Of a stretch of DNA of 64,000 nucleotides, positions 3,001-63,350 are shown one piece after another. Source of the stretch: Saccostrea echinata (Eukaryota); the NCBI RefSeq assembly GCF_033153115.1, contig NW_026889765.1, positions 11,222,001-11,286,000 of the forward strand, written 5' to 3'. A model generated the notes under the pieces. That model was not told the origin of the DNA, did no database searches, and saw nothing but the letters and a program-made list of their open reading frames with translations. Every line of letters begins with the position of its first letter. The first letter of the stretch is position 1. A program made the position numbers and the translations under genes.

Positions 3001-4145
3001 AAAAAAAAACAACATACCATCCAAATTCGAGAGAAGTCAAACATAGTCAAAATAGCTTAATTTTTCTGAAAACATTTCAAGGAAAATATTTCTATTCATA
3101 TCAATACATGTAGTTTCTTTTTTAATTCTTCAAATAGTTTCCATGCCAATCAAAAGGTTCCTTTTTTAACTTCATTTCAATAATTTGCTAAAAACTTTTG
3201 TAAGAAATGTTATCTTTTTGCATATCAATACCTCAACTAATGTATATGAGCAGGAGTCTGGAGCAAAACTGTAACGATTTCCATCAAATGTGGCGACGTG
3301 ATTCAATCCTGTCATTTCACAGCTAGACGAACATCGGTCTTCTTCACAGGTCCATCTTCCTCTATCACAGGTGCTGAAAAATAGGACTTGAACGGTATAC
3401 TAACAATTACCAAATTATTGAATGATTTTAGGAACCACACACAATTAAAGGTTGGCTTTTATGATAGAAAATTATTCTTTACAATAAACAATAACTTTCT
3501 ATGTGGAATACTTTGAAACACTCTAGATCTTACCAAAGATTACAGCGTTGTTTAATGGTATCGCCATGCTTGTACTGCTTCTTGTTAAATTCACACATGC
3601 AGTCCTCTGCCTTGACACATTTTCCGTCCTGAAGGAAGGTCCCCACTGGACACTGACATCCGCTGATACACATCTTACACTCATCTGGCTCCACTAGGTA
3701 AAGTGTCCTGCAGGTCCGGGGGCAGGAGGAGGTACACTCAGAATATTCCAAGGGTGTGGGACACTCTCGTGCTGTAGTAAAATATAGTGGATTTGACATC
3801 TTTTTAACAATGTATTTCTTTATTTATTCCTATTATTGAATAAAAAGTATCATGTAATTTTTTTATATATCTTTAAAACGAGGTTTGATAAAAATGCCAG
3901 TCCCTACTTGCATTACTCATAGTCATACTCACGACATAAATATTTGGACCTCCATTTCATGACGATGTTGATAGCGGCACATTCCTGGGAATAAGCATTG
4001 GCATATTGGCATCGCACGTCGTTTCTGTCTTTTTCTGTCGTGGCTTTACAGTGCATATTCTTACACATTGTGTAGTACATCTTTGGGTTAATCTGTGGAT
4101 AAGTGTGTAAAATGAGGTATCCTTACTTGGTAGTACAAACAAATT

Positions 4146-4197
<52 letters not shown>

Positions 4198-10100: not shown

Positions 10101-12345
10101 TTTAGGGGTCATGAATATTTTTCACAAGTTAAATTTGACAAATGACAAACATCAAACACAGTCACAATATTGTCAAGTGTCATTGTGAGCACGCACCTGA
10201 TATTTTATCCTCACACCGGTATCCTGTATATTCGGGGGGACAAGTACAAACATCAGTTGGACTCGTACATTGTCCACCATTTTGACAACTCGGGGTACAG
10301 TGCGCTGAAAATAAATGCAGGAATATTGATTTTAAGATACCTTTCAGTAGTATTTTTCGAGTTCTGTTTAAATCAAATGCATTTTTTATTTAAGCATGCT
10401 AATTTTTCGAAACATTAAACTTCCCTTATAAATAGCCTGGGGAATAACTGGATTTGTATGATATGCTTTTTAAAATAAATTTTAAACTTTAACTTAATAT
10501 TGGATTAACATGAAGTAAAAATTAACTTTTCATCATATATGTAAATGGAGCTGTTTTCAAGGGGTTTTTTTTTTATAATCGTTTAATATGCTATGCTAAC
10601 GATATATCATTGGTTCTTATTCCTCGGTGTCCACTTACCAATGTCACATAACAGAGTGCCTTCTTGTGAGCTGATCCACCCATTACAGCAGCCCTGGGAA
10701 GTCGCATGTGTGACCCTAAAAATAGATTCAATCACTCTGAATACTACTAGAATCTAAACTTTTTCGGACTGTGTTGACATGAAGAATGATTATGTTGCCC
10801 TGTGTCATTTTTTAACAAACAGCATAAATAATGGCATTTAACTTTGAAAAGCAGATCTTATTGTTTTCACAAGAGACATTTTGCTGAGTACCTCTTGGTG
10901 TCAAAAGGGACAGAAATGTCACTATACAATTATTGTTCAAAATATGCAAAAGATGTTATTTGGTGAAATATACAACATATCAATGTCAGCAGGCAAACAG
11001 TTACAGGATACGTCCTGTACGACAAAGAATTGTCATGTATGAAGAATCTTTTATTTGATTGAGTTGTACCCTTTTCATGAGATATGTCACTTTTAATATT
11101 GTTTCAAACATTAAACTATCATCGATTTGTTTCACTCTCTGTTTCTATAACAACAACATCGTTTTAAACCACGGTCGGTAGTCCGCGTATATATTTCTCT
11201 CCTACCCGTGGCTACTGATCAATACATGAAACCTAAAACTGCGACTGGGAATTGAAAGGTTGCCTCAAAGGTCAGATTCCAACTATGCTTTACCCGCATT
11301 GGTCAATATTTTAATGAGCTACGAAATATTCTCTTCTCATTCAACCATGACCGAAAGGGAGAGGATCAGACATTTTGGCCTTGGCTTGAGTCGATGAAAT
11401 ATGACGATAACGAACAGTATTCAATCTCGAAAGTGCAATGAAACGATACAAATTTGGAGCAGAGCAAATACGGACCTCAAATTTTAGAGGTGGGGTCAGG
11501 TGCCATGGAGGAGTGAGCATCCCCTGCCGACCGGTCACACCCGCTGTGTGCTCCTTGTCATAATCGGGAAAAAACCCCGGAAAAATCCGTAGACAGTTCA
11601 GTGTAACAACGGATACATATGAGGCTCGTAAGATATTTCTGTTTTCAAATGTTTTTGTGATGCTTTTGTTTATTAAAAACAGAAAGGACGAAGTCCAGTA
11701 ATATCTGATACTTAAGTTGTAAAGTACTTTGTAGAGACGCCTTTTTGTACAAATAACAGCGTCCTAAATATTTATAGGAATTACATTGAAATATTGCCAA
11801 AGATGGTTGACATGAGAACATAGATATATATATACGTCATGAACTTAAAAAATTGTGTAGAGGGCTTTTCTAAGAAAGCATCATTTAATAAAATTATGAG
11901 TGCAAGATAGTTTCCGGCATATATAAAACTTCATGTGGCTATTTCCTCATCACTTATTTTTGTATCCGTCTGTCCAAAATTATAACAAAGAATGACACAT
12001 CAGCAAAACTTTTCATCATTTTTTAATTTAGAAGTACATATATTCGAATTGCAGAGACTGGGATTTGTATCCCAAATTTCATGCTTGCGTTTTAATGTCG
12101 TTTGTTCGGTGTTATGTGTATCTTTGAAATGTACTCAGTATCTAATACATGAATCTTACTTGAAGAAGAAGCAGTCTAAGTCACCAGGGTTTCTGACGAT
12201 ATCGTTGATTTGTTTGGGTGTTTTTCCTGGAAAGGACTTGGTCTGGTTTAACGTCCATCCCGTTACCACCTTGTCTATGAATTTGGCACATTTTTCCTCT
12301 GATTCTTGACTTATCGTCCGTGTAAAATTACATACATGACTGAGG
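1..12345 (-). CDS. Gel-forming mucin / von Willebrand factor / SCO-spondin / hemolectin-like protein, partial (EMI-like, EGF, TB-like, VWD1-C8-TIL-E, VWD2-C8-TIL-TIL-E, VWD3...)
   Basis: 20 phase-compatible GT-AG exons in transcription order: 12345-12160, 10715-10639 (GCCNGW), 10304-10197 (EGF: CTPSCQNGGQCTSPTDVCTCPPEYTGYRC), 9890-9720 (CCTNGGRGWG, TB-like), 9567-9365 (VWD1: YYRTFDGLEYEFGGMCTY), 8889-8772, 7709-7542 (QGLCGNLN), 7420-7335, 6012-5902, 4092-3933 (C8), 3771-3534 (TIL), 3373-3232 (VWD2: HVATFDGNRYSF), 2990-2661, 2347-1948, 1783-1510, 1366-1156, 995-904, 766-717, 629-294 (VWD3: GDPHYTTFDG), 161-1 (EGLCGNYDG). The signal-peptide exon was not resolved, and the gene runs off the left edge. 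Confidence 0.9.
4147..4191. repeat. Compound (TA)n(GA)n microsatellite
   Basis: Directly visible, in a mucin intron. Confidence 0.95.
5130..5385 (-). mobile_element. tRNA-derived SINE-like interspersed repeat
   Basis: The minus strand begins GGTCGCCCAGTGGTAAGAGCG (A-box-like) with a degenerate B-box (GAGTTGATCC), has a GC-rich body, and ends in an (AAAC)n-type tail near 5130-5140. Confidence 0.6.
8400..8600. repeat. Degenerate ~45-bp minisatellite
   Basis: Recurring atcattagtgg...atcc/gtccataat...tatacat units. Confidence 0.55.
8980..9316. mobile_element. Kolobok-like MITE (TTAA TSD)
   Basis: ttaa|GGACATACGCAA ... TTGCATATGTCC|ttaa: short imperfect TIRs flanked by TTAA. Confidence 0.55.
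11385..11600 (-). repeat. High-copy interspersed repeat fragment (spurious 'GRQGMLTPPWHL' ORF)
   Basis: GC-rich block gggatgctcactcctccatggcacctgaccccacctct, recalled as a common oyster interspersed repeat; intronic. Confidence 0.5.
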
Positions 12346-46949: not shown

Positions 46950-49387
46950 TTAAGACACCTCCTGGTACAACATACAACATGTTTTTAATAATACTGTAAG
47001 ATTTACATGCAACGTGTATAACTAATTAAGTTGATTAAGCCAAAGGCAACAAATCACATGTACTTTGGTCAGGTCACTCCGAAGAGCATCAATACGGTCA
47101 AATTAAAGATATATAAAATCAGTTTATCATTTGAAACGGAGATGTATCTGTCCGATATTTCCCTCGGGTTGTTTAGAAATATCATCAAATAATTAAAGAT
47201 CTCTCACCTTAATGGAGCACATGTTATTTTGATATTTCTGACAAAACAACGTGGTTCGGTTACTTTTTCTCCCCTCAGATTCTTGTATCCTTTACAGCCT
47301 GAGGGAACTGTTTATAAGACAGGAAAATATAGTGCTGTATTAACATTTTCTGACAATTTCCTGCAGTTATAGAATTCTTTTTTTCTTTTGTGGTTTGTGG
47401 TATTGGTCATATCAGTAATTATACTAGATCTTGTGTTTACCTAAAAATAAATCAGTGTTAACGTAACCTGTACCGGTCTGTCAAATTAGCATGCATAGTA
47501 TAAATACCATTATAAGAATAAAGAGATTCGGTATTACAGTGAGCCAACACACTCGTCAATAACCATGTATTTTATTAACATGTTCCAAAATAAGTACATG
47601 TAATGGATGTTTTAAATGAACAGAGCCAAAAGAAGAAGAAAAAAAACGTTTTTTAATTAAGTAAAAATGCAACCAAAAAAAGAGAGAGAGAGAGAGAGAG
47701 AAAAGAAATGCATATAGATCTAGTAAAGAATTTGTTGCTAAAACTTACATATCAGGCACGTAGAAACAGGGGGGGGGCAGGGGGGCCTCCCCCTCCCCCA
47801 CTTTTTTTCATAGACATTTTTTACTCTTTGAAATGTTAATTGAAAGGCCGGTTGCCCCCCTTTTTTGTTGTAGAATAGTCAAATAAGGTAGAGTCTATAA
47901 CATAACCCAGTCACGGTTTCCGGGAAAATTATTTCCGGTATGGTTTTCAAATGTACAATTTTATTTAATACCGAACCCGATTGTATTTTTCGTGACATTG
48001 AGGCGGGAAATCCAAGTAAGGAAAAGTTCGAGGTATTGAATGCCGTTATCCTTTCATCTGTTCATCTCAGCAACTGTATGAAATGGACGAAGAAACAAGG
48101 TAAGAATGTTGTATGAAGATAATTATGATATAGTGAATATGCGGTATTCAAGAAATTCTCAACACCTGGATAAGTTTTTGTAAAGATATAATCACTGATA
48201 ATACCCGGATTCAAAGAGAGAGGGTGCCAAGTTGTTTTTTTATTATTATTTTTTTTCCTTATCCATAGTGACACTTGGAAAGATCAGTTCGATGTAAGAT
48301 CAACATCACTATCTGGGTAAGTGACATCTTCCACAAAATTGTACAAGTTGTTACAGGAGTACGATTATGCAACTTCCTCTAGGTTCCGATGCTTAAAAAG
48401 TTCCATACAATTTGGAAAGGATGTTGGTAAGGTCTTGTTGCAATATTTTATTTTTAAATGCAACTTCAGCAAAATAATTTCTTGAATCTTCTCATTATTG
48501 TAACAATTTTAAGCTCACCTGAACCATAGACTCATGGTGTCGGGTGGTTACATTTTGATTCCGTGTTTGACCTGCATGGTTACGACCTATTAAGTGGTTT
48601 TGACCTGCTCACAGGTAAGTACATGGGTAGCTGTATATTGATAACATAATAGCTTTTAAATTAATAATTAAAATATGCATTGTCGATAAAAAAATCCTAT
48701 GTAGACAAAAACAAAATGTGAAACTGTTGCAAGTGTTAATTAATTGCTTCAGAACGAAACCACTTGTGTCGAACATGGATTTATGTCGAAACCACATGGG
48801 TCGAACAAGTAAGAGGAAGGTAACCATCCCCATTCTAGGCTCACATGAGCTTTTGTGATTGAAGTTTGTCCATTGTCTGTGTTGTTGGTGTGTTGGGTGT
48901 TGTAAACATTTTTAAAAACTTCTCAACTTATTCTCCAGAAAAGTTGAGAAGTTGAACTTAGAAATTTTTTATGTATTTGTTCAAAGTAAACCCCCCCCCC
49001 CCTCCTTTCAGATTCACATTTGTTAATACCAATTTACACTGAAAATTCTTTTGCAATTACTGTAGATGTAGGAGAGATTGATAAATCCCATATCAGATTT
49101 GTGGACACACAGGAAAATGCTGAACCCCATATAGAATATGATGCTATCCCTTTCATTATTATGGGCAAAAAAATCTTGGAATGTCACCAGGGATATGACA
49201 GAGACGAAAGAAACAACCAAAAGAAACAAAGCAAAGCAAGAGAAGATGTAAGTATGCATTATTTATTCTACATCTAATAAACTAATAATGAGGCAAAGAT
49301 GAGGACTGAGAAGGATAACCCACTGTCTAGGGTTTCACATTAATTTTATGAGAACTAGACCAGTCGGGCTATATCCATTCTCTGGGG

Positions 49388-50773
49388 AACAACATAACCC
49401 AGTCACTGTTTAACATAACCCAGTCACTGAGGAACATAACCCAGTCACTGAGGAACATAACCCAGTCACTGTCAACATAACCCAGTCACTGTTCAACATA
49501 ACCCAGTCATTGTTTAACATAACCCAGTCACTGAGGAACATAACCCAGTCACTGTTCAACATAACCCAGTCACTGTTTAACATAACCCAGTCACTGTTCA
49601 ACATAAGCCAGTCACTGAACAACATAACCCAGTCACTGAGGAACATAACCCAGTCACTGTTTAGCATAACCCAGTCACTACACAACATAAGCCAGTCACT
49701 GTTTAACACAACCCAATCACTTTACATCATAACCCAGTCACTGAACAACATAACCCAGTCACTGTTCAACATAACCCAGTCACTGTTTATCATAACCCAG
49801 TCACTGAGGAACATGACCCAGTCACTGTTCAACATAACCCAATCACTGTTTAATATAACCCAGTCTCTGTTCAACATAACCCAGTCACCTTTCAACATAA
49901 CCCAGTCACTGTTCAACATAACCCAGTCACTGAACAACATAACCCAGTCACTGAACATCATAACCATGTCACTGAGGAACATACCCAGTCACAGAGAAAC
50001 ATAACTAAGTCACCGAACAACATAACCCAGTCACTGAGGAACATAACCCAGTCACTGTTCAACATAACCAAGTCACTGAACAACATAAGCCAGTCACTGT
50101 TTAACACAACCCAATCACTTTACAACATAACCCAGTCACTGAACAACATAACCCAGTCACTGTTCAACATAACCCAATCACTGTTTAATATAACCCAGTC
50201 ACTGTTCAACATAACCTAGTCACCTTTCAACATAACCCAGTCACTGTTCAACATAACCCAGTCACTGAGGAACATAACCCAGTCACTGTTCAACATAACC
50301 CAGTCACTGAACAACATAACCCAGTCACTGAGGAACATAACCCAGTCACTGTTCAACATAACCCAGTCACTGAGGAACATAACCCAGTCACTGTCAACAT
50401 AACCCAGTCACTGAACAACATAACCCAGACACTGTTTAACATAACCCAGTCACTGTTCAACATAAGCCAGTCACTGAACAACATAAGCCAGTCACTGTTT
50501 AACATAACCCAGTCACTGTTTAACATAACGCAGTCACTACACAACATAAGCCAGTCACTGTTTAACACAACCCAATCACTTTACAACATAACCCAGTCAC
50601 TGAACATCATAATCATGTCACTGAGGAACATACCCAGTCACAGAGAAACATAACTAAGTCACTGAACAACATAACCAAGTCACTGAGGAACATAACCCAG
50701 TCACTGTATAACATAACCCAGTCACTGAACAACATAACCCAGTCATTGTTCAACATAACCCAGTCACTGAACA
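49388..50773 (+). repeat. 21-bp tandem array, ~65 copies (left foldback arm, in intron 3 of the element gene)
   Basis: Unit AACATAACCCAGTCACTG + TTC/TTT/AAC/AGG. Confidence 0.97.
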
Positions 50774-53049
50774 TTGTATATTGTAAGTTACTTGGAAATG
50801 GTAAATTGGATCTGAAAGAGATATTCTTGAGAAAATGTTTTCTTTATATATCACACATATATTTCTGTACTCAAATTCACAATATATTTATTAACTTGAC
50901 ATGCTAAATGATTTCAGATCTCTGTAGAATATAATTTGAGGAAAGACCCCAAAAAGGTAAAAATATTTTAACAATTTTGGGGTAAAATCACAATTTTTTT
51001 TTTAACAGCTTTTTTCTGTTGTCAATGAGATGTTAAACTAATTTATTTCTGTAGAACTTACGTATGAATACCTAAGTGTGCATGTTCATCTTTGTCATTA
51101 ATTAATCAACAATTACAGTTGTCCTGCAAAGCCAATATTCTTCAATTAAATATCGGTTTTATTGACAGTTATAAAATGGTTAGGTAATAATGAAGGCCAG
51201 TACACAAAAAGTTCATCTTTGATCAATTACTTTTCAGAAAAGAAAGAGAACATCTTTCTTGTACTCAGATATTAGAGGAAGGTACACAAAAGTTTCAGCA
51301 TGGGCATTGAAATAGAAAAGTTCTTAGTTTAGACTTCTTTATAAGCAATTGCAATAAGTCCAGCAGTTTGAGTTACAGAGTAGTTGTAGCAAACAACCAT
51401 TGCAAAGATTCCCTCATCCTTTTATGTTTATAAATGGGAATCTTTGAGATGTTCCAAATTCAATCATATACATGTACATGAAAGTTTCATACTAAATATT
51501 ATTGCATGTTATTAGTACTAATAATGATATTTAGTAAACATACAAGCATGTAACTTATAAAAAGCACCCTTTTTGGAATTTATTGAATTCAGCACCAGGC
51601 ACAAAATTCAGTATGCTCATTAACTATATTTGTTGTGATTATATGCAATGTATTTACTTTTTATTTTCATAAACCATTTTATGTAAACCTTATGTGTATG
51701 ATTTGTATTAATGATCGGTAATATGTTGTTTGTGTGTAGGGTGTATGTGTGTGTGTGTTTTTGGTTGATTTCACTCAATTAGCTTAATTTATTATTAGAC
51801 ACTGGTTAAATGTTAACTTGCATATACACAGAATTATTAGAAGCATGTGTACATACAGTTTTATTTTGTCATTTCATTTTTGTAGGTAAATATGTTTTTC
51901 TTTTATTTTAGATATGTGCCTTGTTCAAAGGTGAGGCATTTGGGAGAGAGTTCTACAGTTCTTACAGTAAGTATACACAGTTATAAGAGAAAGCAATTCC
52001 CTTTGATTATGTAGAGCTAGGTTTGATAAATTTTTTTTAAATTGATAAACAAATCTGTGTTTTAGGAGGGAAATGAGGTTTACCCATTATAATATCTTTC
52101 ATCCAAATATTTTTTTTTTTCATCAAAAACTGCCAAAAATGTTTTCTTCAGACCTTTTAACAATATAAGCAGAGGGGAAAAAATAGAATATTATTTGATC
52201 TTTGATATAAAAATGGCCTATGAACTTTTTAAGCAGAACTTTGGACTTATAGTCACAGACCAAAACATATATGAGTAAACAGTTGTAGTAACTCAGGCAG
52301 TAATGAAAGATGCTGTCAACACATACTATCAGAAAATGGCCGGTTTGTCAGATTGCTTCTTTAGTTAAATTTTGTAAGTACATCGATAACAGGCTAATGC
52401 AAAACTTCAAGAGAGATTAATCCCTTGCATATCTAATGAATGAAAATCCAGTGTATTGATGCAAGCAGATCCACTTTTTTTTTAAGCAGATTATCAAAAT
52501 TAATGAAACTTGAGGTTGTTAAGACATTTTGACGATATGATCCATGTTCTGTAAGGTGATACCATATATATGACATATAATGCCATATTTACACATATAT
52601 CTTTATAAAAATTGCTACAGTTGTGTATGTATATTTAAGAAATTATTGTGTTAATGAGTGTAGTGTAAATTTAAGAGTGCAGTGCTGATTTTTTATATTT
52701 TTTTTTTTTTTTTTTTTTTTTACATCTAGTCATTTTATTATTTTACTGGACAACCCTTGTATTTTGGTCATAGCAATATAGATGATACAAATGAAAATTC
52801 TTATTAAATGTACTAGTCATTAATTCATCGTATTTTTTCCACTAAACAGAAAGCTTCAGAACAGATATCAGAATGCAATGCCTTGTTGCACAAGAGTGTA
52901 AAAGCTGAAGTGAGTATAATAATAATAATTAATATACATGCAATTCACACCTTTAGTATATAAATGCATTCCAATGTCTTTCTGGTTACTTTCCATGTCA
53001 CCTGACCCATTAAATATTCCTATGAGCATTTCTAATGAAACAAATTCTT

Positions 53050-53228
53050 CTGGTGTCCATCATACTATCTTTAAACTATTTACATTATAAAAATAAAACA
53101 TGTATGATGTTTTAGGGTAACACATTAAATTGATATCCTTTGAAAACCATTGCTGACTGATGCAAAGCTGAGGTCATCAATGGTTTTCAAGGGATAACAA
53201 TTTCACATGTTACCCTAAAAACGTATTA

Positions 53229-53273
<45 letters not shown>

Positions 53274-53866
53274 CGTTGTCCGTCTGTTAATTTTTCACAT
53301 TTTCATCTTCTTTTCAAGAACCACTAGGCCAATTTTAACCAAAGTTGGTACAAAGCATCCTTTGGTGAAGGGGAAATTAAATTGTTAAAATAAGGGGCAA
53401 ACCCCCTTACAAGGGGAGATAATCAAGAAAAGGCAAAAATAGGGTGGGGTCATTAAAAAATCTTCTTCTTAAGAACCGCTGGGCCAGAAAAGCTTAAACT
53501 CGTGGAATCATGCTGGAGTAGTGTAGATTCTAAATTGTTAAAATCATGATCCCCAGGGATAGAGTGGGGCCACAACAGGAATCAAATTTTTACATTGAAA
53601 TATATATGAAAAAATCCTTGGAGATCTCCTTTTTAAGAACCACTGGGCCAGATATGCTGAAATTTATGTGGAAGCAACCTGGAGTAGTGAAGATTACAAA
53701 TTGTTAAAATCATACTCCTTGGGGTAGGGTGGGGCCACAATAGGTATAACATTGGGGAAAGTCTGGTGAAGAACAGCATGGCCAAAGTTACTCAGGTGAG
53801 TGTTGTAGCCCATGGGCCTCTAGTTTTTATAATGTAAATAGTTTAAAGATAGCATGATGGACACCA
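53050..53866. mobile_element. Palindromic MITE interrupted by a HINE (53228-53826), inside the foldback element
   Basis: Outer arms ctggtgtccatcat.ctatctttaaactatttacattataaaa / ttttataatgtaaatagtttaaagatag.atgatggacaccag; inner hairpin 53111-53220; HINE ends ttagctcacctgagctgaaagctcaagtgagc and ctcaggtgag..gcccatgggcctctagtt. Confidence 0.7.
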
Positions 53867-55243
53867 GGAAGCAATGGTTTTCAAGGGATAACCTTAAAAA
53901 TGTAAATATTTTCCTTTGTTATACCAAATCTATTTAGAATAAAGCATTTTAAAAAAAGAACCCACAGTAAACGGTACGGGCATACATTCTGCCCAATTTT
54001 GCACTGTAACCTGTCGTCATGCAATGTCACCGTTGCTATGTAATGTTACGTGGAGGGTAGCAGTACTTTTTAACAAATGTTTTTAAACCAATCAAATTTG
54101 ACTTAACATAAAAGTTAAACAATAAGGTTTGTCTATATTGTTCATGAAAAATTAACATTTTTTTGTTTATATATAGACTGAACAGTCCATGAAACTGGTT
54201 TACATTTTGTGCGAATGGCCAAGGATGGATCTTCCCATAAACAAGGGAACAGGAAACATACAAGGCTACAATATAGCAACTCTGGTAATTTTTAGTATCA
54301 GAGCTGTTGCATGCATGGTTATCTAACAGCCCTGGGTTCAGAATTTAATTCTGTCTTATTTATCACTCAATTTTACTGTTTATTTCACACAATCATATGG
54401 TGTGATCTGACTTTCTGATCAGTTTTCTGAATCCCTATCAACACTTTTTGAAACTGACTCAATCTTCAGGTCAAGTTAGAGAAATTTATTAAGAATTGAT
54501 GTTTAGATATATAAACAGCATGATATATATATAAAAGCTCAACAATGAAGATTAGAGTGAAAAAGGGGATAGTATAGCCTGCTCTAAGTGATTAGTAATA
54601 GTTCTATAACACTACCTGTTTATGGCAGAGAGATTTTCAGGAGAAAAAATTCCTGTAATTATTTAAAAATTTTAACAGTTTGCAAAAGACATCAAAACAA
54701 AGCTGAAGGAAATATTGGAATTAGAAGAGGGTGATAAGAGGTAAATAATAAACATTGAAAGCAGCCATTTACTTTTAAATTGTCTTCATTGAATTTATGG
54801 GCAATAAAATGAGATTCCAGTCATTGGAAATTAAAGAGAATTTATGGTATGTCTTTTGTAGTTTAACACTGTTTTATGCACTTTGGTTTACAAGATGTAC
54901 CGTAACAACTGGTTAAAATTAAATTAACTTGATCGAGTGTTATAATATTCCTTTTACAGGTGTTATGAACCACACTGGAGACATATGCGATGGATTGACA
55001 GGAATGACTTGACCGACCATAATGTGATGAATAACTCTGTGAAAGGAATGGAAGAAAGAAATAAACTTTTTCATAAAGAGGTAACATCCATATGTATTCT
55101 CTGTAGATTTTAATGTATAAGCATACAATGTATTTTACAAGGCTAGTCCTGCATATTCTTGCTCATGTGCAGGTGTTGTTATGGATACTGATTTATAACA
55201 TGATTGTTTTCTTTTTTATTGAACAGAGTCTTTCTCATATATA

Positions 55244-55419
55244 CAGTTGAACTTCGGTATCTCGAACACGGATATCTCAAATCTTATGGATATGTCGAAG
55301 TGATTTGGAAGTCCCAAGCACTTAATATTTTAAGTATTTTACCCCCAATATCTCGAACCCTCAGATATCTCGAAGTTTATTCTCGGTCCCATTGAGTTGG
55401 AGATAACGAGGTTTGACTG
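55244..55419. mobile_element. Tc1/mariner-type MITE (TA TSD) in intron 9 of the element gene
   Basis: TA|CAGTTGAACTTCGGTATCTCGAA ... GAGATAACGAGGTTTGACTG|TA. Confidence 0.8.
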
Positions 55420-57242
55420 TATATATATATATATATGAGCGTGTGTGTGTGTGTGTGTGTTAGAGAAGGAAACAAGTTTATTTGCCTATTTTTTTTCCCT
55501 TCCAATAGAGATGGGCTGAAATGAGTGCTCTTGTTTTAAAAGAATTTGGCTTGTTTAAACCAAAAACACTCATGTAAGTTTATACCTCAATTTAATTTGC
55601 TATTCTATAGCTATATAAACTTACCACGGAAGATGAATCTTAACCTATCACCTTTAGAGCTTTGTGAATATTTAACTCTTGGAGTTAAGAAAATTGTCGT
55701 CAAGACTTCATATAAGTCCGACTAAGATTTATAAATAAATTTCTAGACATATATCATCAGTACATCTGCTTACTAAGGATTGATTTCAAGAGGTAGACAT
55801 AATGTACCCATTAAAGAATATTGTATGTACTGTAAATAATTTTTTTTTTGGTGATAACTTTATTTTTGCATATTAGCGAGACTGTTTGTAGGGGAAAATT
55901 TCATTCACACATAATATTCCTCTTATAAAGATTATATAGGGCAGATATCAAAAGTTGTGAAAATTTTATTTTGTTTATAAATATCAAATAAAAGAAGCAC
56001 ACATTTTGCACCAAGGTAATTCCACTCCCCCTTTTCAACAAATTAAAGACAACTAAGTCATGTTCAGCATTCTTCATTGTACTTTTTTAATTAAAAAAAT
56101 TTGTCGATTTTAGTGGTCTCTTCAGTCCTCCAGGATATTACCTTAGTTTGAAAAACTGCAATAATGGAAAGCTTATGGCAACACTGGAAGATGAGTATGA
56201 TATTTTTTTTATTCATCCTTGTTGAAGAAAATGGAGAGGCATATTGTGTAAAGTCAGTCAGGGGTTATCTTTGTAACTAAATTGTTAACTTTTAAAGTAA
56301 ACCATATGTCTCTTCATATCCATAATTTAATCATAATTCACGTCTGATTTTTTCTTGATTTGATTGATCTCCATAGACAACTTTATTCTTAATTATTTTC
56401 ATTCTCTTTTAGGACAGGACAGAGATTGAATGAAGGAGTTAGATACTTTAAGGATGTATTGCTTGTAGAAGCAAGAATCATTATCGCTTCTGTTGTCAAG
56501 AACATAACATATAGAGAAGCTGAAGAACTTCTCTATCCATTGAAATAACAAATTTATGTTTCAGTTGATTGAGTTTGCAAATTTGTTATATTGGAATATT
56601 TCGATTGTGATAGCATTGCAAAAGATGTTCTACATCAATTGCTATATGACAACAATGTTGAACTTACAATATTTGTCAGGGCTGATCAATTGTATTTGGT
56701 TACTCTAGATGAACTCATAAACTCTAATAATTGTGATTTCATTCAAATCAAATCCACACCAGTCCCAGACTGTTTTATCATTAATTCCTACTAGAAACAT
56801 TAGTTTAAATGTAGGAAGAATTTGATAAAATTTGATGTATTTGACTTTGAAAATATCTAATAAAGTTTTGTTTTTCTGACAAGTGAAATGAATTTCACAT
56901 GCAGAATTCATACCATTGGATTTGGGTGTATAATTTAAAAGGAACACTTGTGCAACCATGCATTATTTCTTAAACAGTACCTGTAATACATTTGTATGGT
57001 CTTAATATTGTGTGGCAATTTTTTTCCCCTAGGATTAATTGATCTATGTTATTTTTATCTTTAGGTTCCTCAGTGACTAAACCCAATTTGTATAAAAATT
57101 GGGAGCAGAGCTCTAGAAAAAGGCTTAACATTAGTTTATGTTCCAAATAATGATTGTGTCAAATAAATTATTTTCCTTACCACTTTTGTATATATGCCTT
57201 ATATATGGAGACCAAATTATGCACATTAATTCATATTCAATG

Positions 57243-60200
57243 CTTGGGTTATGTTTCTCAGTGACTGGGTTATGTTGTTCAGTGACTGGGTTATGCTGTT
57301 GAGAGACTGGGTTATGCTGAACAGTGACTGGGTTATGTTCCTCAGTGACTGGGTTATGTTGAACAGTGACTGGGTTATGTTAAACTGTGATTTGGTTATG
57401 TTGTTCTGTGACTGGGTTATGTTGTTCTGTGACTGGGTTATGCTGTTCTGTGACTGGGTTATGTTGAAGAGTGACCGGGTAATGTTAAACAGTGACTGGG
57501 TTATGTTGTTCAGTGACTGCGTTATGTTCCTCAGTGACTGGGTTATGTTAAACGGTGACTGGGTTATGTTAAACAGTGACTGGGTTATGTTGAACTGTGA
57601 CTGGGTTAGGTTTCCCAATGATGGGTTTTGTTGTACAGTAACTGGGTTATGTTTCTTAGTGACTGGGTTATGTTCCTCTGTGACTGGGTTATGTTGCGCA
57701 GAGACTGGATTATGTTGCTTGGAGACTGAATTATGTTGTTCAGTGACTGGGTTATATATCTCTGTGACTAGGTTTTGTTGTTGAGTGACTGGATTATGTT
57801 TCTCTGTGACTGGGTAATGTTGTTCAAAAACTACGTTATGTTTCTCAGTGACTGGGTTATGTTAAACAGTGACTGGGTTATGTTAAACAGTGACTGGGTT
57901 ATGTTGTTCAGTGAGTGGGTTATGATGTACAGTGACTGGGTATGTTAAGTAGTGACTGGGTTATGTTAAACAGTGACTGGGTTATGTTGTATAGTGACTG
58001 GGTTATGTTCCTCAGTGACTGGGTTATGATAGACAGTGAGTGGGTTATGTTAAACAGTGACTGGGTTATGTTGTTCAGTGACTGGGTTATGTTGAACAGT
58101 GACTGGGTTATGTTGTGTAGTGACTGGGTTATGTTCCTCAGTGACTGGGTTATGATAAACAGTGACTGGGTTATGTTAAACAGTGACTGGGTTATGTTGT
58201 TCAGTGACTGGGTTATGTTAAACAGTGACATGGTTATGTTGTTCAGGGACTGGGTTATGATGTACAGTGACTGGGTATGTGAAGTAGTGACTGGGTTATG
58301 TTGAACAGTGACTGGGTTATGTTGTTTAGTGACTGGGTTATGTTCCTCAGTGACTGGGTTATGTTCCTCAGTGACTGGGTTATGTTGTTCAGTGACTGGG
58401 TTATGTTGTTCAGTGACTGGATTATGTTCCTCAGTGACTGGGTTATGTTGTTCAGTGACTTGGTTATGTTGAACAGTGACTCTGTTATGTTAAACAGTGA
58501 CTGGGTAATGTTGTTCAGTGACTGCATTATGTTCCTCAGTGACTGGGTTATTCTAAACGGTGACTGGGGTATGTTAAACAGTGACTGGGTTATGTTCCTC
58601 AGTGACTGGGTTATGTTCCTCAGTGACTGGGTTATGTTGTATAGTGACTGGGTTATGTTAAACAGTGACTGGGTTATGTTGTTCAGTGACTGGGTTATGT
58701 TCCTCAGTGACTGGTTTATGTTGAACAGTGACTGGGTTTTGTTGTTCATTCATTGGGTATGTTGAACTGTGACTGGGTTATGTTGAACTGTAACTGGGTT
58801 AGGTTTCCCAATGATGGGTTTTGTTGTACAGTAACTGGGTTATGTTTCTTAGTGACTGGGTTATGTTCCTCTGTGACTGGGTTTTGTTGCGCAGAGACTG
58901 GTTTATGTTGCTTGGAGACTAAATTATGTTGTTCAGTGACTGGGTTATATATCTCTGTGTCTAGGTTTTGTTGTTGAGTGACTGGATTATGTTTCTCTGT
59001 GACTGGGTAATGTTGTTCAAAAACTACGTTATGTTTCTCAGTGACTGGGTTATGTTAAACAGTGACTGGGTTATGTTAAACTGTGACTGGTTTATGTTGT
59101 TCAGTGACTGGGTTATGTTCCTCAGTGACTGGGTTATATTAAACAGTGACTGGGTTTTGTTGTTTAGTGAATGGGTTATGTTAAGCAGTGACTGGGTTAT
59201 GTTAAACAGTGACTGGGTTATGTTGTTCAGTGACTGGGTTATGTTAAACAGTGACATGGTTATGTTGTTCAGGGACTGGGTTATGATGTACAGTGACTGG
59301 GTATGTGAAGTAGTGACTGGGTTATGTTGAACAGTGACTGGGTTATGTTGTTTAGTGACTGGGTTATGTTCCTCAGTGACTGGGTTATGTTCCTCAGTGA
59401 CTGGGTTATGTTGTTCAGTGACTGGGTTATGTTGTTCAGTGACTGGATTATGTTCCTCAGTGACTGGGTTATGTTGTTCAGTGACTTGGTTATGTTGAAC
59501 AGTGACTCTGTTATGTTAAACAGTGACTGGGTAATGTTGTTCAGTGACTGCATTATGTTCCTCAGTGACTGGGTTATTCTAAACGGTGACTGGGGTATGT
59601 TAAACAGTGACTGGGTTATGTTCCTCAGTGACTGGGTTATGTTCCTCAGTGACTGGGTTATGTTGTATAGTGACTGGGTTATGTTAAACAGTGACTGGGT
59701 TATGTTGTTCAGTGACTGGGTTATGTTCCTCAGTGACTGGTTTATGTTGAACAGTGACTGGGTTTTGTTGTTCATTCATTGGGTATGTTGAACTGTGACT
59801 GGGTTATGTTGAACTGTAACTGGGTTAGGTTTCCCAATGATGGGTTTTGTTGTACAGTAACTGGGTTATGTTTCTTAGTGACTGGGTTATGTTCCTCTGT
59901 GACTGGGTTTTGTTGCGCAGAGACTGGTTTATGTTGCTTGGAGACTAAATTATGTTGTTCAGTGACTGGGTTATATATCTCTGTGTCTAGGTTTTGTTGT
60001 TGAGTGACTGGATTATGTTTCTCTGTGACTGGGTAATGTTGTTCAAAAACTACGTTATGTTTCTCAGTGACTGGGTTATGTTAAACAGTGACTGGGTTAT
60101 GTTAAACTGTGACTGGTTTATGTTGTTCAGTGACTGGGTTATGTTCCTCAGTGACTGGGTTATATTAAACAGTGACTGGGTTTTGTTGTTTAGTGAATGG

Positions 60201-61265
60201 GTTATGTTAAGCAGTGACTGGGTTATGTTAAACAGTGACTGGGTTATGTTGTTCAGTGACTGGGTTATGTTGTATAGTGACTGGGTCATGTTCCTCAGTG
60301 ACTGGGTTATGTTAAACAGTGACTGGGTATGTTGTTCAGTGACTGGGTTATGTTGTTCAGTGACTGGGTTATGTTGAACAGTGACTGGGTTATGTTGTTC
60401 AGTGACTGGGTTATGTTGAACAGTGACTGGGTTATGTTATACAGTGACTGGGTTATGTTAAACAATGACTGGGTTATGTTAAACAGTGACTGGGTTATGT
60501 TCCTCAGTGACTGGGTTATGTTCCTCAGTGACTGGGTTATGTTGTTCAGTGACTGGGTATGTTGAACAGTGACTCTGTTATGTTAAACAGTGACTGGGTT
60601 ATGTTGTTCAGTGACTGCATTATGTTCCTCAGTGACTGGGTTATGTTGAACAGTGACTGGGTTATGTTGTTTAGTGACTGGGTTATGTTCCTCAGTGACT
60701 GGGTTATGTTCCTCAGTGACTTAGTTATGTTCCTCAGTGACTGGGTTATGTTGAACAGTGACTGGGTTATGTTAAACAGTGACTGGGTTATGTTGTTCAG
60801 TGACTGGGTTATGTTCCTCAGTGACAGGGTTATGTTGTATAGTGACTGGGTTATGTTCCTCAGTGACTGGGTTATGTTGAACAGTGACTGGGTTATGTTA
60901 AACAGTGACTGGGTTATGTTTCTCTCTGGGTTATGTTGTTGAGAGACAGGGTTATGTTGCTCGGTGACTGGGTAATGATTTTCAGTGACTGGTTTATGTT
61001 ATTCAGGGACTGGGATTTGGTTCTCAGTAACTGGGTTATATTTTTCAGTGACTGGGTTATGCTATTGAGAGACTGGGTTATGTTGAACTGTGACTGGGTT
61101 AGGTTTCCCAGTGTATGTGTGTTCATTATCTCACAGTTGAACAGTGAATTGGTTATGTTATTGATTGAGTATAATATGTTGAACAGTGACTAGGTTAGGT
61201 TTTCCAGTGACTGAGTCAAGTTTCACAGTGACTAGGTTATGTTGTTCAAAGACTAGATTATGTTG
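57243..61265 (-). repeat. 21-bp tandem array, ~190 copies (right foldback arm), with a 1026-bp higher-order duplication
   Basis: Unit CAGTGACTGGGTTATGTT+NNN, the reverse complement of the left array; identical pseudo-ORFs recur at an offset of 1026. Confidence 0.97.
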
Positions 61266-63350
61266 GTTTGTAACTGGGAAATTTTTTTCTGTGACCTAAT
61301 GGGTCATATTTAAGAATGATCACTTCTTGTAAAACTGCAGGTCAACAAGTTAGGGATTATTGTTTTTTCACTGTACGTGATTGTCTTTATGGGCGGGATT
61401 CCTTTTACCCTTGGAAGATTACCGTAAAAAATAATTATTGAGAAATTCAAGTCTTTTCTGCTGTGTATACACACATACTAACTATAGGTCACTAGTTCTA
61501 CCAGTGGCTAACAGGCCATGAAAACGCAATCTATTAATTTATCATGTTATACACTGTAACTATTTAATACCCTAACCTTCGTGAAAATCGTTCATTCGCC
61601 TGAATGTCCTAATATTAAGACTCCGATTATGGCTATTGATCGTATTATTTACCACACACCATAGTGTTTACAAAACTATATTGCATCGGGATCGAATATG
61701 CGTTATATTACAAAAAACCATACCGGAAATAATTTTCCCGGAAACCGTGACTGGGTTATGTTATAGACTCTACCGTCAAATAAGGGTTTTTTAGTTGTGT
61801 ATGAATAAAATTTGGTACTGAAAGAAGTTGGAACCTCCCCCCCCCCCCCAACCCCGAAATATTTTCAATTTTCATTTTTACTTTTTTTTTTGGCTTGACA
61901 AGTTTTTTTTCAGGTAAGTTGATTTTTTTTTCTCTGGCTGCCCCCCCCCCCACTTTTAAAAACGATGCTACGTCACTGCATATAACAAACATACTATGTA
62001 GAAAACTGAAATTCATTCTCTCTCTCTCTCTCTCTCTCTCAATTCAAATCGGAAATAAAAAATACACATATGAAGGTTTTAACCTTTAGATATATAGACG
62101 CTTTACAAGTTTCTGAATGACTATGATTATTCCTACAGTAATATCCAATCAGAGTAGGTTTAACATGGAAATTACACGTAAACAAATCGCACATCTGAAG
62201 AGACTTTTTATTGGGCAATTCCACAGGTTGCAAGGTTCACCAACATGGACGTGAGTAGGAGGAAAACCTCCAAGTTGAAATAAACCAGAATGTATATCGT
62301 GTTTCTTGAAGGGATAATTTAGTAAAAGGTAGAAATATTTCTTTATAATTTTTTATGTGTAACAATCATTTCGCACAGTCTAAAAGACAAGGAAAGAAGT
62401 TGACCTGCGAGTGTCACGTTACTGAATTTACTTGTTAACATATTGAAATCAATGTAAAATTTAACAACATACTGCGAAAATACTGATAGGTTTTATGGTT
62501 TTGAAGATATGAATTAAACTCTGGTTAAATTTCTACGGCTACAGAAGATAATGCACTGGACACGGGCACAGTACACATTAAATAGGTTTATACAGAATAT
62601 TGCAGAAATCAATATCTCAAATCTGCTGTGAAATTTATAAAAAAAAAAAAAAATATGTGTGATTTAAAATTATTTGTTAAACTGTACTTAAGTTTGTGTA
62701 TCTGCAATGAAGAGCCTACTGCCTGCAGACGACATATATACATGTACTGATCACAAAGTTAGCCAAGAAATCAATAAACATCAGGGCCAATAGCACATGT
62801 GAGAATATTCAGAAGTAGAAACTCAGTAGATCACAGTGAGAGTGTTGATTAATGACCATTAAGCATCCACACAAAGAAATCCATTATTGAACTTAATTCA
62901 GAACTTGTAAAGTAGAATTAGACAGTTTTTCTTTTTCCTATTACTATTTTATTCACTGCAGAACTTTGAGTAGTGTTCTCATTTAAAAAACAAACATACA
63001 AACAAACACAGCAGGTTCATTACAGGTACTGGCTGCTATCCTTGACTATCCTGCAGATTAATGGATTACAGGAATTGTTGTATATATATGTGACTTTCAA
63101 AAAAAATGTCAAAGTGGAGCTATGATTAAATTTTCTCTTGTTTGAATGATGTATTCTAGCTGACCAATATTTTTCAGGGTCTTATGTGGGTGGGTATGTA
63201 TTATCAGATACTGATAAATGTAGGTTTTAAATAAGATATGGACAATTTGGTAAAAAACAAAACAAAAAAAAGAATTTAAACATGATAGCACTGAAAAAGG
63301 ATTCGGTAGGGGCAATTTTGATGGGTTGGTCAGAGCACTTCAAACATAAT

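Follow-up and report, generated by a model that had tools for sequence, protein, structure and literature searches.

Introduction

Transposons of the Mutator/MULE superfamily are flanked by target site duplications (TSDs) of 8-11 bp, typically 9 bp, and end in terminal inverted repeats (TIRs) of tens to hundreds of bp. A SWIM zinc finger after the catalytic core is common in MULEs, though not universal, and the KI-MULEs of plants are characterized by an additional Ulp1 protease. Subterminal clusters of transposase-binding motifs are known from En/Spm and Ac. Muta1 of Aedes aegypti is a ‘type 2 foldback’ MULE (PMC5499845, PMC5225508) whose subterminal repeats with variable linkers increase transposase binding and excision (PMC5499845). 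In Rehavkus and Phantom, which have a 9-bp TSD and TIRs of tens to hundreds of bp, a minisatellite precedes the 3′ TIR or follows the transposase ORF (Dupeyron et al. 2019, PMC6446971). For Galileo, the DNA-binding domain of the transposase is reported to attach to several sites within the long TIRs (PMC3688188, PMC3573991).

Here, we analyze a 13.9-kb stretch at positions 47878-61783 of the window, i.e. the whole 64,000-nt stretch of Saccostrea echinata DNA under study. This stretch is a recently moved MULE that lost its transposase core. It belongs to a known class, of which it is a well-preserved example, and does not represent a novel type of element; foldback-type MULEs with subterminal repeats or minisatellites have been described (Muta1, Rehavkus, Phantom). 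Very probably, the element represents a non-autonomous internal-deletion copy of a low-copy, foldback-like family of large cut-and-paste MULEs with arrays of putative transposase-binding sites. The family may already be catalogued in Repbase or Dfam.

Results

Ends of the element, target site, and genomic family

The window copy is bordered by two identical 9-bp TSD copies (GTCAAATAA) at 47878-47886 and 61775-61783. The adjoining 61-bp TIRs, located at 47887-47947 on the plus strand and at 61714-61774 on the minus strand, match at 61 of 61 bases when the right one is reverse-complemented, and the identity breaks off sharply at base 62. TIR length and TSD are thus those of the Mutator/MULE superfamily, the TSD being perfect in the window copy and in nine others. 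The left TIR begins with GG-TAGAGTCTA, a 4-1-4 palindrome, and contains one copy of a 16-bp core (AACATAACCCAGTCAC) at 47899-47914; the right TIR harbors this core at 61747-61762. Both flanks in the window are parts of one high-copy repeat of ~345 bp. In at least nine other copies of this repeat the matches to the left and right flank overlap by exactly 9 bp, so these copies are empty sites with a single copy of the target sequence. The window copy entered a copy of this short interspersed repeat via a 9-bp staggered cut.

The TIR was found at at least 40 genomic places with 93-100% identity, and a genome search proposed in an earlier sequence-only reading of the locus yielded nine other TIR pairs with nine different perfect 9-bp TSDs, so that a chance pattern can be dismissed. 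In total, 19 left and 18 right ends were counted for a family of ~20-25 loci with element lengths of 4.5-29 kb. Four sister pairs, 99.3-99.7% identical, have deletions in common and differ in locus and TSD, which shows recent mobilization in trans. The window copy itself has a sister (C25) at another site with a divergence of just 0.35% and was thus mobilized in trans not long ago. The perfect ends and the recent insertion with movement in trans, all claimed in the sequence-only reading, are thereby borne out.

Two inverted arrays of a 21-bp unit

Two arrays inward of the TIRs were delimited with Tandem Repeats Finder. The left one (49390-50769, plus strand; 1.38 kb, period 21, 65.9 copies or ~66 units, unit CAACATAACCCAGTCACTGTT) starts 1,442 bp inward of the left TIR with its core oriented as in that TIR. 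The right one (57245-61105, minus strand; 3.86 kb, period 21, 184.5 copies or ~184 units) is inverted and holds an internal duplication of ~1,026 bp. It is followed by the right unique subterminal region (61106-61713) with four degenerate units at 61175-61264, and the repeats on this side lie 449-608 bp inward of the right TIR. Stretches of up to 893 nt in the two arrays are complementary to each other at 82-86%. Their inverted and asymmetric arrangement, set apart from the TIRs, had been correctly described from the letters.

The unit consists of an 18-bp conserved core and a 3-bp variable linker: among 2,451 units compared, the core positions are conserved at 90-99% and the three linker positions at 47-54%. 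The core includes the palindrome CAGT-C-ACTG, equals a segment of the TIR, occurs once in each TIR, and is oriented alike with respect to each end in arrays and TIRs. This core/linker pattern suggests multimerized, putative transposase-binding sites. Both arrays were retained in 13 of 13 copies examined, including a 4.5-kb minimal copy with little else left, and array size in the family ranges from 26 to 271 units per arm (0.6-6.5 kb). Between sister copies of 99.3-99.7% identity, array length varies by 0.5-2 kb; such kb-scale changes between near-identical sisters are also expected of a neutral unstable minisatellite.

It is possible, although we consider it rather doubtful, that the arrays are functionless unstable minisatellites which expanded within an already existing intron and close to the other end, hitch-hike with the element, and have no role in its transposition. 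The length differences between sisters and the duplication within the right array fit this explanation. Moreover, related MULE families of the same genome have an intron of only 0.5-0.8 kb at the matching place of the ALS2CR8 domain, so the array is a family-specific addition. Against it stand the strongly conserved core beside three nearly free linker bases, its identity with a TIR segment in an orientation kept relative to each end, and the presence of both arrays even in the minimal copy; moreover, repeats of such kind raise excision in Muta1.

The DDE-bearing copy and its transposase gene

The copy C22 (29 kb; C22:18805844-18835056) shares its ends and arrays with the window copy and exceeds the other copies in length by 14 kb, at one place only. 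The PF10551 search of TIR-bounded copies suggested earlier gave a match at C22:18827180-18827428, between a TIR pair of the family. In the catalytic ORF, PF21056 (E 3e-11) and PF10551 (E 4.3e-9) each exceed the curated cut-off, and the motifs LLDATY, MCDYAEEE, and CDFHREQ align with invariant columns of homologues. A Mutator/MULE DDE transposase is therefore encoded by C22, in a decayed gene copy, and the assignment to the Mutator superfamily with foldback-like inverted arrays holds on the basis of the 9-bp TSD, the TIRs, and these exons. An ORF upstream of the catalytic one matches PF15299, and an adjacent ORF shows a CxC..CxH arrangement (PSCDCEDW..MVCKH; PF04434 E 0.027, under the cut-off). 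Alignment of the homologous protein P0006 of Mizuhopecten with C22 is co-linear, starting in the ALS2CR8 exon and continuing beyond the array through exon 2 and the exons for MULE and SWIM into the tail. The left array of C22 fills a predicted 4.2-kb GT..AG intron of phase 0, with GAT|GTAAGT as donor and T10-GTAG| as acceptor. In the exon-4 region, C9b and C22 are 98.9% identical, and traces of Ulp1-like exons are present in C22. On sequence grounds, the C22 transposase is cognate to the family and not nested.

Among 25 long homologous transposases, ALS2CR8 and MULE domains occur together in 21, SWIM passes the cut-off in 13, and a PHD finger is found in three; the profile of these homologues matches SENP/Ulp1 proteases at the C-terminus (E ~1e-8). 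The comparison shows that the ALS2CR8/CaRF-type domain is, as judged from homology, the DNA-binding domain that is standard in a widespread clade of animal MULEs. A scan of 13 ORFs of the decayed C22 gene and two of C9b, with small exons left out, gave no PHD hit.

Only C22 bears DDE exons, and this copy is decayed, with exon 3 missing, two in-frame stops, and one end truncated; an intact transposase gene of the family was not found in the assembly. The autonomous partner postulated in the sequence-only reading is thus identified in type, as a DDE-bearing copy that is decayed. Instead of an unseen intact family copy, a related MULE family of this genome could have supplied the transposase for the recent moves. 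The DDE exon of such a family is 72-74% identical (e.g. C14:2355061), and there are related copies with open frames in the ALS2CR8 and MULE exons, in addition to the absence of an intact cognate gene. Cross-mobilization usually requires matching end motifs, however, and no TIR match of at least 93% lies near the related-family loci, which leaves this source unlikely.

The transposase gene remnant in the window copy

The left unique subterminal region (47948-49389, plus strand), present in all copies with 91-98% identity, carries the 5′ end of the transposase gene. An exon at 49062-49247 (plus strand) encodes the start of the ALS2CR8/CaRF-type DNA-binding domain. It covers profile positions 7-56 of PF15299 (E 6.2e-9, over the curated cut-off), matches Mizuhopecten P0006 in tblastn (E 6e-19), and ends at a GAT|GTAAGT donor. 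In all, 16 family copies carry this exon in their left unique region. A candidate upstream 5′ exon with approximate limits at 48327-48426 (plus strand; ending in YDYATSSRFRCLKSSIQFGKD before a GTAAGG donor) is indicated by weak co-linear tblastn matches to homologues (E 0.005-0.05), and a TAA stop at 48318-48320 corresponds to TAT in the sister C25. The sequence-only reading had placed the left array in an intron of the element's own gene, and the donor at 49247|49248 together with the matching acceptor in fuller copies agrees with this. The intronic position and the exon limits, both predictions, are supported by homology and splice signals.

At the deletion junction (50770-50778) the last array unit and a few filler bases are joined to sequence which lies 14.15 kb further on in C22. 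Through this 14-kb deletion, the gene lost the acceptor of the intron as well as the exons encoding the remaining DNA-binding domain, the DDE core, SWIM, and the tail; a profile search found no DDE domain in the window copy. Both the missing domain and the status as internal deletion derivative had been anticipated. Other copies carry nested deletions of the DDE region of C22 with differing break points.

The common internal region (50779-57244, plus strand) is without a long ORF and is 99.5% identical to C25 and 93-97% to other copies. Near its end lies a 3′ module of three exons on the plus strand, predicted by tblastn with Mytilus proteins. Two small exons at 55509-55565 (RWAEMSALVLKEFGLFKPK; E 0.001, co-linear) and 56133-56189 (GYYLSLKNCNNGKLMATLE; E 0.003) match the C-terminus of Mytilus coruscus P0003, and the final exon at 56420-56545 (ending in NEGVRYFKDVLLVEARIIIASVVKNITYREAEELLYPLK) matches Mytilus P0001 (E 3e-13) and P0003 (E 5e-12). 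The final exon also has a weak likeness to the PWWP3A/B C-terminal domain (PF20886, E 0.0037, under the curated cut-off).

A multi-exon gene had been noticed inside the element, and its remnant, 5′ exons and 3′ module, was mapped by homology. Its identity as a ‘cargo’ gene was rejected: the 5′ exons encode the element's own ALS2CR8/CaRF-type domain and continue into MULE DDE and SWIM exons in C22, so it is a gutted transposase gene. A Pack-MULE-like carrier, in which the internal gene or at least the PWWP3A/B-like 3′ module was captured from the host, is accordingly quite improbable. For the 3′ module, capture could draw on the PF20886 likeness and on the lack of this domain in all 25 long homologous transposases. 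The match is below the cut-off, though, and the module aligns co-linearly, at ~50% identity, with the C-termini of gene models from Mytilus in which a MULE domain is present as well, and is therefore an old, conserved part of the element lineage. A host PF20886 gene was not detected in the genome, in a search whose controls likewise gave nothing. Captured host fragments between the MULE ends, the hallmark of Pack-MULEs, are not what the 5′ exons represent.

That the DDE exons of C22 stem from an unrelated nested MULE, with the 61-bp-TIR family belonging to another superfamily or moved by an unrelated enzyme, is extremely unlikely, for although these exons occur in one copy only, within 14 kb of extra length at a single place, one homologous protein runs co-linearly, on one strand and with matching splice phase, over the family-wide exon, the parts also present in C9b, C15, and C1 (exon 2 and the exon-4 region), and the MULE and SWIM exons of C22 alone, while the other copies are nested deletions with different break points and the 9-bp TSD fits a MULE.

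Discussion

Comparison with described elements

The family shares with Muta1 a MULE DDE transposase, a TSD of 8-9 bp, a palindromic terminal motif, tandem subterminal repeats with differences confined to short linkers, and naturally occurring non-autonomous derivatives whose two ends differ in repeat number. Muta1, however, is 3.2 kb long and has nine copies of a 12-bp repeat within a 145-bp TIR, whereas the elements described here measure 4.5-29 kb and carry 26-271 copies of a 21-bp unit per arm in arrays of 0.6-6.5 kb. Unique sequence of 1.4 kb and 0.6 kb lies between these arrays and the 61-bp TIR, and the left array is housed in a predicted intron of the transposase gene. In type 2 foldback MULEs the TIR itself is composed of terminal motif and tandem repeats; here, each TIR has one core copy and the tandem copies lie inward. 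Judged by analogy, the design is functionally analogous to that of Muta1 and architecturally different.

With Rehavkus and Phantom the family has the 9-bp TSD, the TIRs, and the minisatellite before the 3′ TIR in common, and a PHD finger as in Rehavkus occurs in the three homologues mentioned above. In contrast to both, there are inverted arrays at both ends, and the DNA-binding domain is of the ALS2CR8/CaRF type instead of FLYWCH. Inverted arms of short tandem repeats with great structural dynamism are also typical of Drosophila Foldback (FB), with a 9-bp TSD, and Galileo. In these, the repeats form the terminal arms, whereas here they lie inward of unique subterminal segments (1,442 bp and 449-608 bp) and inverted terminal identity ends at 61 bp. 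Galileo furthermore differs by its P superfamily transposase, 7-bp TSD, and THAP domain. The Ulp1-like traces in C22 and the SENP/Ulp1 match of the homologue profile recall plant KI-MULEs, and the putative binding-motif clusters beside the transposase gene's 5′ end are reminiscent of En/Spm and Ac, but the present family belongs to an animal lineage, has another DNA-binding domain, and its motif clusters are far larger and regularly spaced.

Proposed mechanism

A full element would begin with the 61-bp TIR, ~1.4 kb with the transposase 5′ exons, and the 21-bp array filling the intron. The exons for the remaining ALS2CR8/CaRF-type domain, the MULE DDE core, SWIM, the tail, and Ulp1-like protease traces would come next, and then an internal region ending in the small conserved 3′ module, the inverted 21-bp array, ~0.6 kb, and the TIR. 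In the window copy, the 14-kb deletion starts at the inner edge of the left array and took away the acceptor and all catalytic exons, while the two ends, the two arrays, the 5′ exons, and the 3′ module were spared. Each array unit would be one putative transposase-binding site, composed of the 18-bp core and the 3-bp free linker, and the spacing of 21 bp, two helical turns, would place the sites on one face of the DNA. By recruiting many transposase molecules, the two inverted arrays may help to join ends 10-18 kb apart, as has been shown at a small scale for the 12-bp subterminal repeats of Muta1.

A more far-reaching and speculative idea, to which we give little credence, is that the arrays are an evolved device: dozens to hundreds of in-phase sites for the ALS2CR8 domain would allow oligomerized transposase or foldback of the arrays to bring together ends at this distance, and the intronic left array would allow the enzyme to control its own transcript. 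If true, this would explain the continued movement of unusually long non-autonomous copies. It would further follow that CaRF, a vertebrate neuronal factor, owes its DNA-binding domain to domestication from the MULE clade; in the literature searched, no paper making this link was found.

Implications for transposon research and annotation

The family provides a clean natural series for testing what subterminal repeats do in foldback-type transposons, comprising a single relic with DDE exons, at least four lineages that underwent independent deletions and recent mobilization, and the 4.5-kb minimal copy, all of which hold both arrays with very different unit numbers. Recognition of ALS2CR8/CaRF as a MULE-clade domain gives a new label to many bivalve genes now called “uncharacterized” and offers a hint as to where CaRF came from. 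In genome annotation, the “11-exon gene” at this locus should be treated as the remnant of a transposon, masked accordingly, and not be taken for a host gene. A minor observation concerns the interior of the element, for which older MITE insertions had been claimed; these occur in all family members and are not private to the window copy. A fragment of ~105 bp from a high-copy interspersed repeat (48731-48835; 491 first-look candidates, 85-88% identity) is likewise common to all family copies.

Termini and arrays of the window copy

The Mutator-type element begins at 47887 of the window, directly after the left TSD GTCAAATAA (47878-47886), and the same nine bases stand directly after its right TIR (61775-61783). 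Read on the opposite strand, 61714-61774 repeats the opening 61 bases of the element without a mismatch (61/61), and the identity of the two ends stops sharply at base 62, in agreement with the perfect 61-bp TIRs and perfect 9-bp TSD described in the sequence-only reading. Tandem Repeats Finder located the left array on the + strand at 49390-50769, with a period of 21 bp and 65.9 units of CAACATAACCCAGTCACTGTT, and the right array, composed of the same unit in inverted orientation on the - strand, at 57245-61105 (184.5 units). Four degenerate 21-bp units lie outside the right array proper (61175-61264). Both arrays are conspicuous in the GC skew of the window and are mutually complementary over up to 893 nt (82-86%). 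Distances to the TIRs of 1,442 bp on the left and 449-608 bp on the right bear out their position inward of the ends.

Within the right array, a segment of ~1,026 bp is duplicated and yields identical 164-aa pseudo-ORFs at 58255-58749 and 59281-59775, 1,026 bp apart, which shows that the array expands not only unit by unit but also through duplication of whole blocks. Long ORFs inside the arrays were rejected as genes, because the 21-bp unit corresponds to seven codons without a stop and such ORFs are an artefact of it. Outside the arrays, the ORFs of 12 family copies include no long one.

Copies, target sites and family size

In the window's own 923-Mb genome, the 61-bp TIR gave at least 40 scored matches with 93-100% identity, including ten facing pairs spaced 9.6-18 kb and an eleventh spaced 4.5 kb. 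Apart from that of the window copy, nine TIR pairs carry nine different 9-bp duplications; the perfect ones are CATTAACAT, GTTTACTTT, GAATTCAAC, TTAAATGTC, TTGACGTTG, CTTTCTTAC, GAAATACGC and GATCCTAAG, and a ninth, ACTTTTTAC, is nearly perfect. This search, proposed earlier as a check, thus provided nine further pairs with independent TSDs. The family TSDs have a GC content of 32% (window, 34%) and show no clear consensus among them. With the unique subterminal regions as queries, 19 left and 18 right family ends were found, and the 21-bp satellite is restricted to family loci in a genome search, so that the family comprises ~20-25 loci. In addition, a left and a right family end face each other at a distance of 47.8 kb on another contig (C8:4385203-4432981), which are either the termini of one giant copy carrying large insertions or parts of two separate, broken copies.

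The window copy is inserted in a very abundant interspersed repeat of ~345 bp, which forms the flanks 47746-47886 and 61775-61978 (437 and 1,691 first-look candidates at 78-88% identity). At nine or more further copies of this repeat, the left-flank and right-flank matches overlap by exactly 9 bp, for example at C30:10866241-10866249, C10:5716127-5716135 and C8:9617143-9617151. Such loci represent paralogous empty sites, where the target occurs once. A chance inverted repeat or a segmental duplication was rejected in view of the many copies, sharp ends, independent TSDs and empty sites, and the initial observation as a whole is confirmed.

Layout and variation among family copies

Comparison of eleven family copies revealed the same order in all of them: TIR, ~1.5 kb of unique sequence, + array, internal region, - array, ~0.66 kb of unique sequence, and TIR. 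The internal region shows 93-97% identity between copies and nested deletions. The copy on contig C25 is 99.5% identical to the window copy, with 30 substitutions in 8.65 kb outside the arrays. The copy on C11 (L050, C11:2897785-2902298) is a minimal member of 4.5 kb with nearly abutting arrays, 45 bp apart, and is the family's nearest approach to a pure foldback.

Several smaller features were observed. A 105-bp piece of a high-copy repeat (window 48731-48835, 491 first-look candidates) occurs in the left subterminal region of all copies and is ancestral to the family rather than a later insertion into the window copy. The C15 copy contains, on the - strand (L036:8910-10000 continuing in L037:1-256), a nested insertion with a reverse-transcriptase-like ORF of 449 aa, and private insertions of 0.6-0.8 kb are located at element position 344 in C1 and at 593 in C56 and C9a. 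Another tandem repeat (period ~156 bp) was detected in C9b, one of the fuller copies (C9:52181419-52199560; repeat at L038:3068-3631), and in the matching part of C22, C15 and C1. It is located in the transposase-gene intron after the second DNA-binding-domain exon, and a further copy of this region, ~70% identical, is present in C9b, C15 and C1.

A transposase-bearing copy and its homologues

A profile search of the whole genome with PF10551 gave one match inside a family TIR pair (C22:18827180-18827428); among the TIR-bounded copies, for which the sequence-only reading had suggested this test, C22 is the single positive one. The copy bearing the DDE domain spans 29.2 kb (C22:18805844-18835056) and has the ends, arrays and internal region of the family; a further 14 kb separates its left array from the start of the window-type internal region. 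Several of its ORFs lie on the strand matching the window's + strand: a MULE ORF (PF21056, 3e-11; PF10551, 4e-9), a SWIM-type ORF with a CxC..CxH motif (PF04434, weak, 0.027), a tail ORF on the same strand as the MULE ORF, and an upstream ALS2CR8 ORF (PF15299 positions 90-143, 4e-7). Exon traces of an Ulp1/SENP-like protease follow the SWIM and tail exons in two sets (C22-element 10776-11386 and 13845-16043; positions run from this copy's left end in the orientation of the window). Plant KI-MULEs are likewise associated with an Ulp1/SENP-like protease.

A HMMER search with the MULE exon against 1.8 billion proteins found 2,052 relatives. Identity is highest, at 72-76%, for those of Mytilus trossulus, M. 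coruscus and M. edulis, and reaches 61% for P0006, a Mizuhopecten yessoensis protein of 1,180 aa. MULE was present in all of 25 long relatives, preceded by ALS2CR8 in 21, while SWIM was found in 13, PHD in three and C48 peptidase in two. The C-terminal part of the relatives' profile matches SENP1/2 and Ulp1 protease structures (E ~1e-8); among solved structures this was the sole match to the clade profile, with none for the DNA-binding or DDE part. ALS2CR8 (PF15299) is the N-terminal domain in 21/25 long MULE transposases related to the element, with E-values down to 9e-39, and was matched at window 49062-49247, at L053:4440-4649 (-) in the C22 copy, at L038:5072-5473 (+) in the C9b copy, and in P0006 and the further homologous proteins P0031, P0102 and P0121. 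In Pfam, ALS2CR8 is named after the vertebrate calcium-response factor CaRF. The literature searched contained no paper linking ALS2CR8 or CaRF to transposases; the DNA-binding domain of CaRF may be a domesticated MULE domain.

Gene structure and position of the left array

The multi-exon gene inside the window copy had been taken for cargo, a view not borne out here. The window ORF at 48990-49274 matches ALS2CR8 positions 7-56 (E 6.2e-9), this 5′ exon is present in 16 family copies, and in C22 it continues into the MULE and SWIM exons. Homology searches run one exon at a time placed P0006 co-linearly in C22, in the order ALS2CR8 exon, array, exon 2, MULE exon, two more exons, and SWIM exon with tail. 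By this homology, the supposed cargo gene is a remnant of the element's own transposase gene. A weaker candidate 5′ exon lies near window 48327-48426; just upstream of it, the frame reads TAA in the window copy versus TAT in C25.

The ALS2CR8 exon ends at a donor GAT/GTAAGT (window 49247/49248, C22-element 1154/1155). The next exon of C22 starts in phase 0 after TTTTTTTTTTGTAG at C22-element 5346 and reads SDHAYRRKRRLVQ, aligning with P0006 from residue 101. The left array of C22 occupies positions 1300-5314, inside this intron of 4,191 nt. Homology to P0006 together with the donor and acceptor signals thus supports the earlier proposal that the left array lies in an intron of the element's own gene. 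In related MULE families of the genome, the corresponding intron of the ALS2CR8 domain measures just 0.5-0.8 kb, so that the array is an addition specific to this family. Loci of related MULEs include C14:2.353-2.356 Mb, C5:11.826 Mb, C5:6.312 Mb and C7:6.258 Mb.

Internal deletion and the 3′ module

The left array of the window copy ends with CCCAGTCACTGAAC, followed by a few filler bases and then by sequence matching C22-element 19468. From this junction, ~14.15 kb are gone from the window copy, comprising the acceptor site of the intron, the remainder of the DNA-binding domain, and everything from the DDE core through SWIM and the tail to the Ulp1-like traces. Three exons of a 3′ module are present in the window at 55509-55565 (E 1e-3), 56133-56189 (E 3e-3) and 56420-56545 (E 5e-12), matching co-linearly the C-terminus of two Mytilus gene models that also hold the MULE domain. 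This module is an old component of the element lineage and may be the terminal part of the transposase or a separate gene. The last exon has a weak likeness to the PWWP3A/B C-terminal domain (E 0.0037), falling short of the cut-off; a genome search with PF20886 for a host PWWP3A-like gene was empty, its controls being equally empty.

Recent mobilisation in trans

The MULE exon occurs once in the genome at 100% identity, the next matches (72-74%) belonging to other families, and the C22 copy itself is decayed. It is without the 1.3 kb that in C9b carries exon 3 (PF15299 positions 163-229, E 3.4e-10), is interrupted by two in-frame stops, of which one falls within the conserved block that follows CDFHREQ and the other lies past SWIM, and has one TIR without its last 8 bases and no TSD at that end. 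No intact transposase partner of the family was found in the assembly. Four sister pairs nevertheless share private deletions or insertions at different loci with different TSDs, namely window-C25 (99.7% identity), C28-C29 (99.5%), C9a-C56 (99.4%) and C1-C15 (99.3%). Mobilisation in trans has been recent and repeated despite the missing partner, the source of transposase being either an intact copy absent from the assembly or the enzyme of a related family. Apart from the cargo gene, the original interpretation is largely right.

Possible function of the arrays

In 13 copies, with 2,451 units in total, conservation is 90-99% at unit positions 2-19 and 47-54% at positions 20, 21 and 1, which defines an 18-bp core, AACATAACCCAGTCACTG, with a free 3-bp linker. 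The core includes the palindrome CAGT-C-ACTG, and 16 of its bases are found once per TIR, facing the element's end in the same way as in the arrays; the TIR starts with GG and the palindrome TAGA-G-TCTA. In Muta1, similarly, the terminal motif is palindromic and the subterminal repeats, of 12 bp, differ in their linkers, and more repeats lead to more transposase binding and more excision (PMC5499845). By analogy, we infer that the array units are putative sites at which the ALS2CR8-type domain binds. Being spaced by 21 bp, or two helical turns, they would lie on one face of the DNA, and the two inverted arrays could help synapsis of the distant ends. Such help would matter, since cut-and-paste transposition is said to lose efficacy beyond ~6 kb (PMC6431247). 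Sister copies differ in unit number by kilobases of array, and homogenisation between the arms of one element was not seen, linker-variant spectra having a cosine of 0.83-0.87 between elements versus 0.84 within one element; both count against a strict functional reading.

Comparison with known element types

MULEs are common in bivalves (PMC10294476), and the family has a TSD, TIRs and, in one member, a cognate DDE domain as in this class. It is neither a strict Foldback element nor a type 2 foldback of the Muta1 kind, because its repeats do not form the termini. With Rehavkus it shares a minisatellite before the TIR and a 9-bp TSD (PMC6446971); a PHD finger was not found in the family ORFs scanned. 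Within this known class the element represents an instructive variant; its new features are how large the arrays are and that they are displaced from the ends, the apparent placement of one of them in an intron of the transposase gene, and the size at which copies are still mobile.
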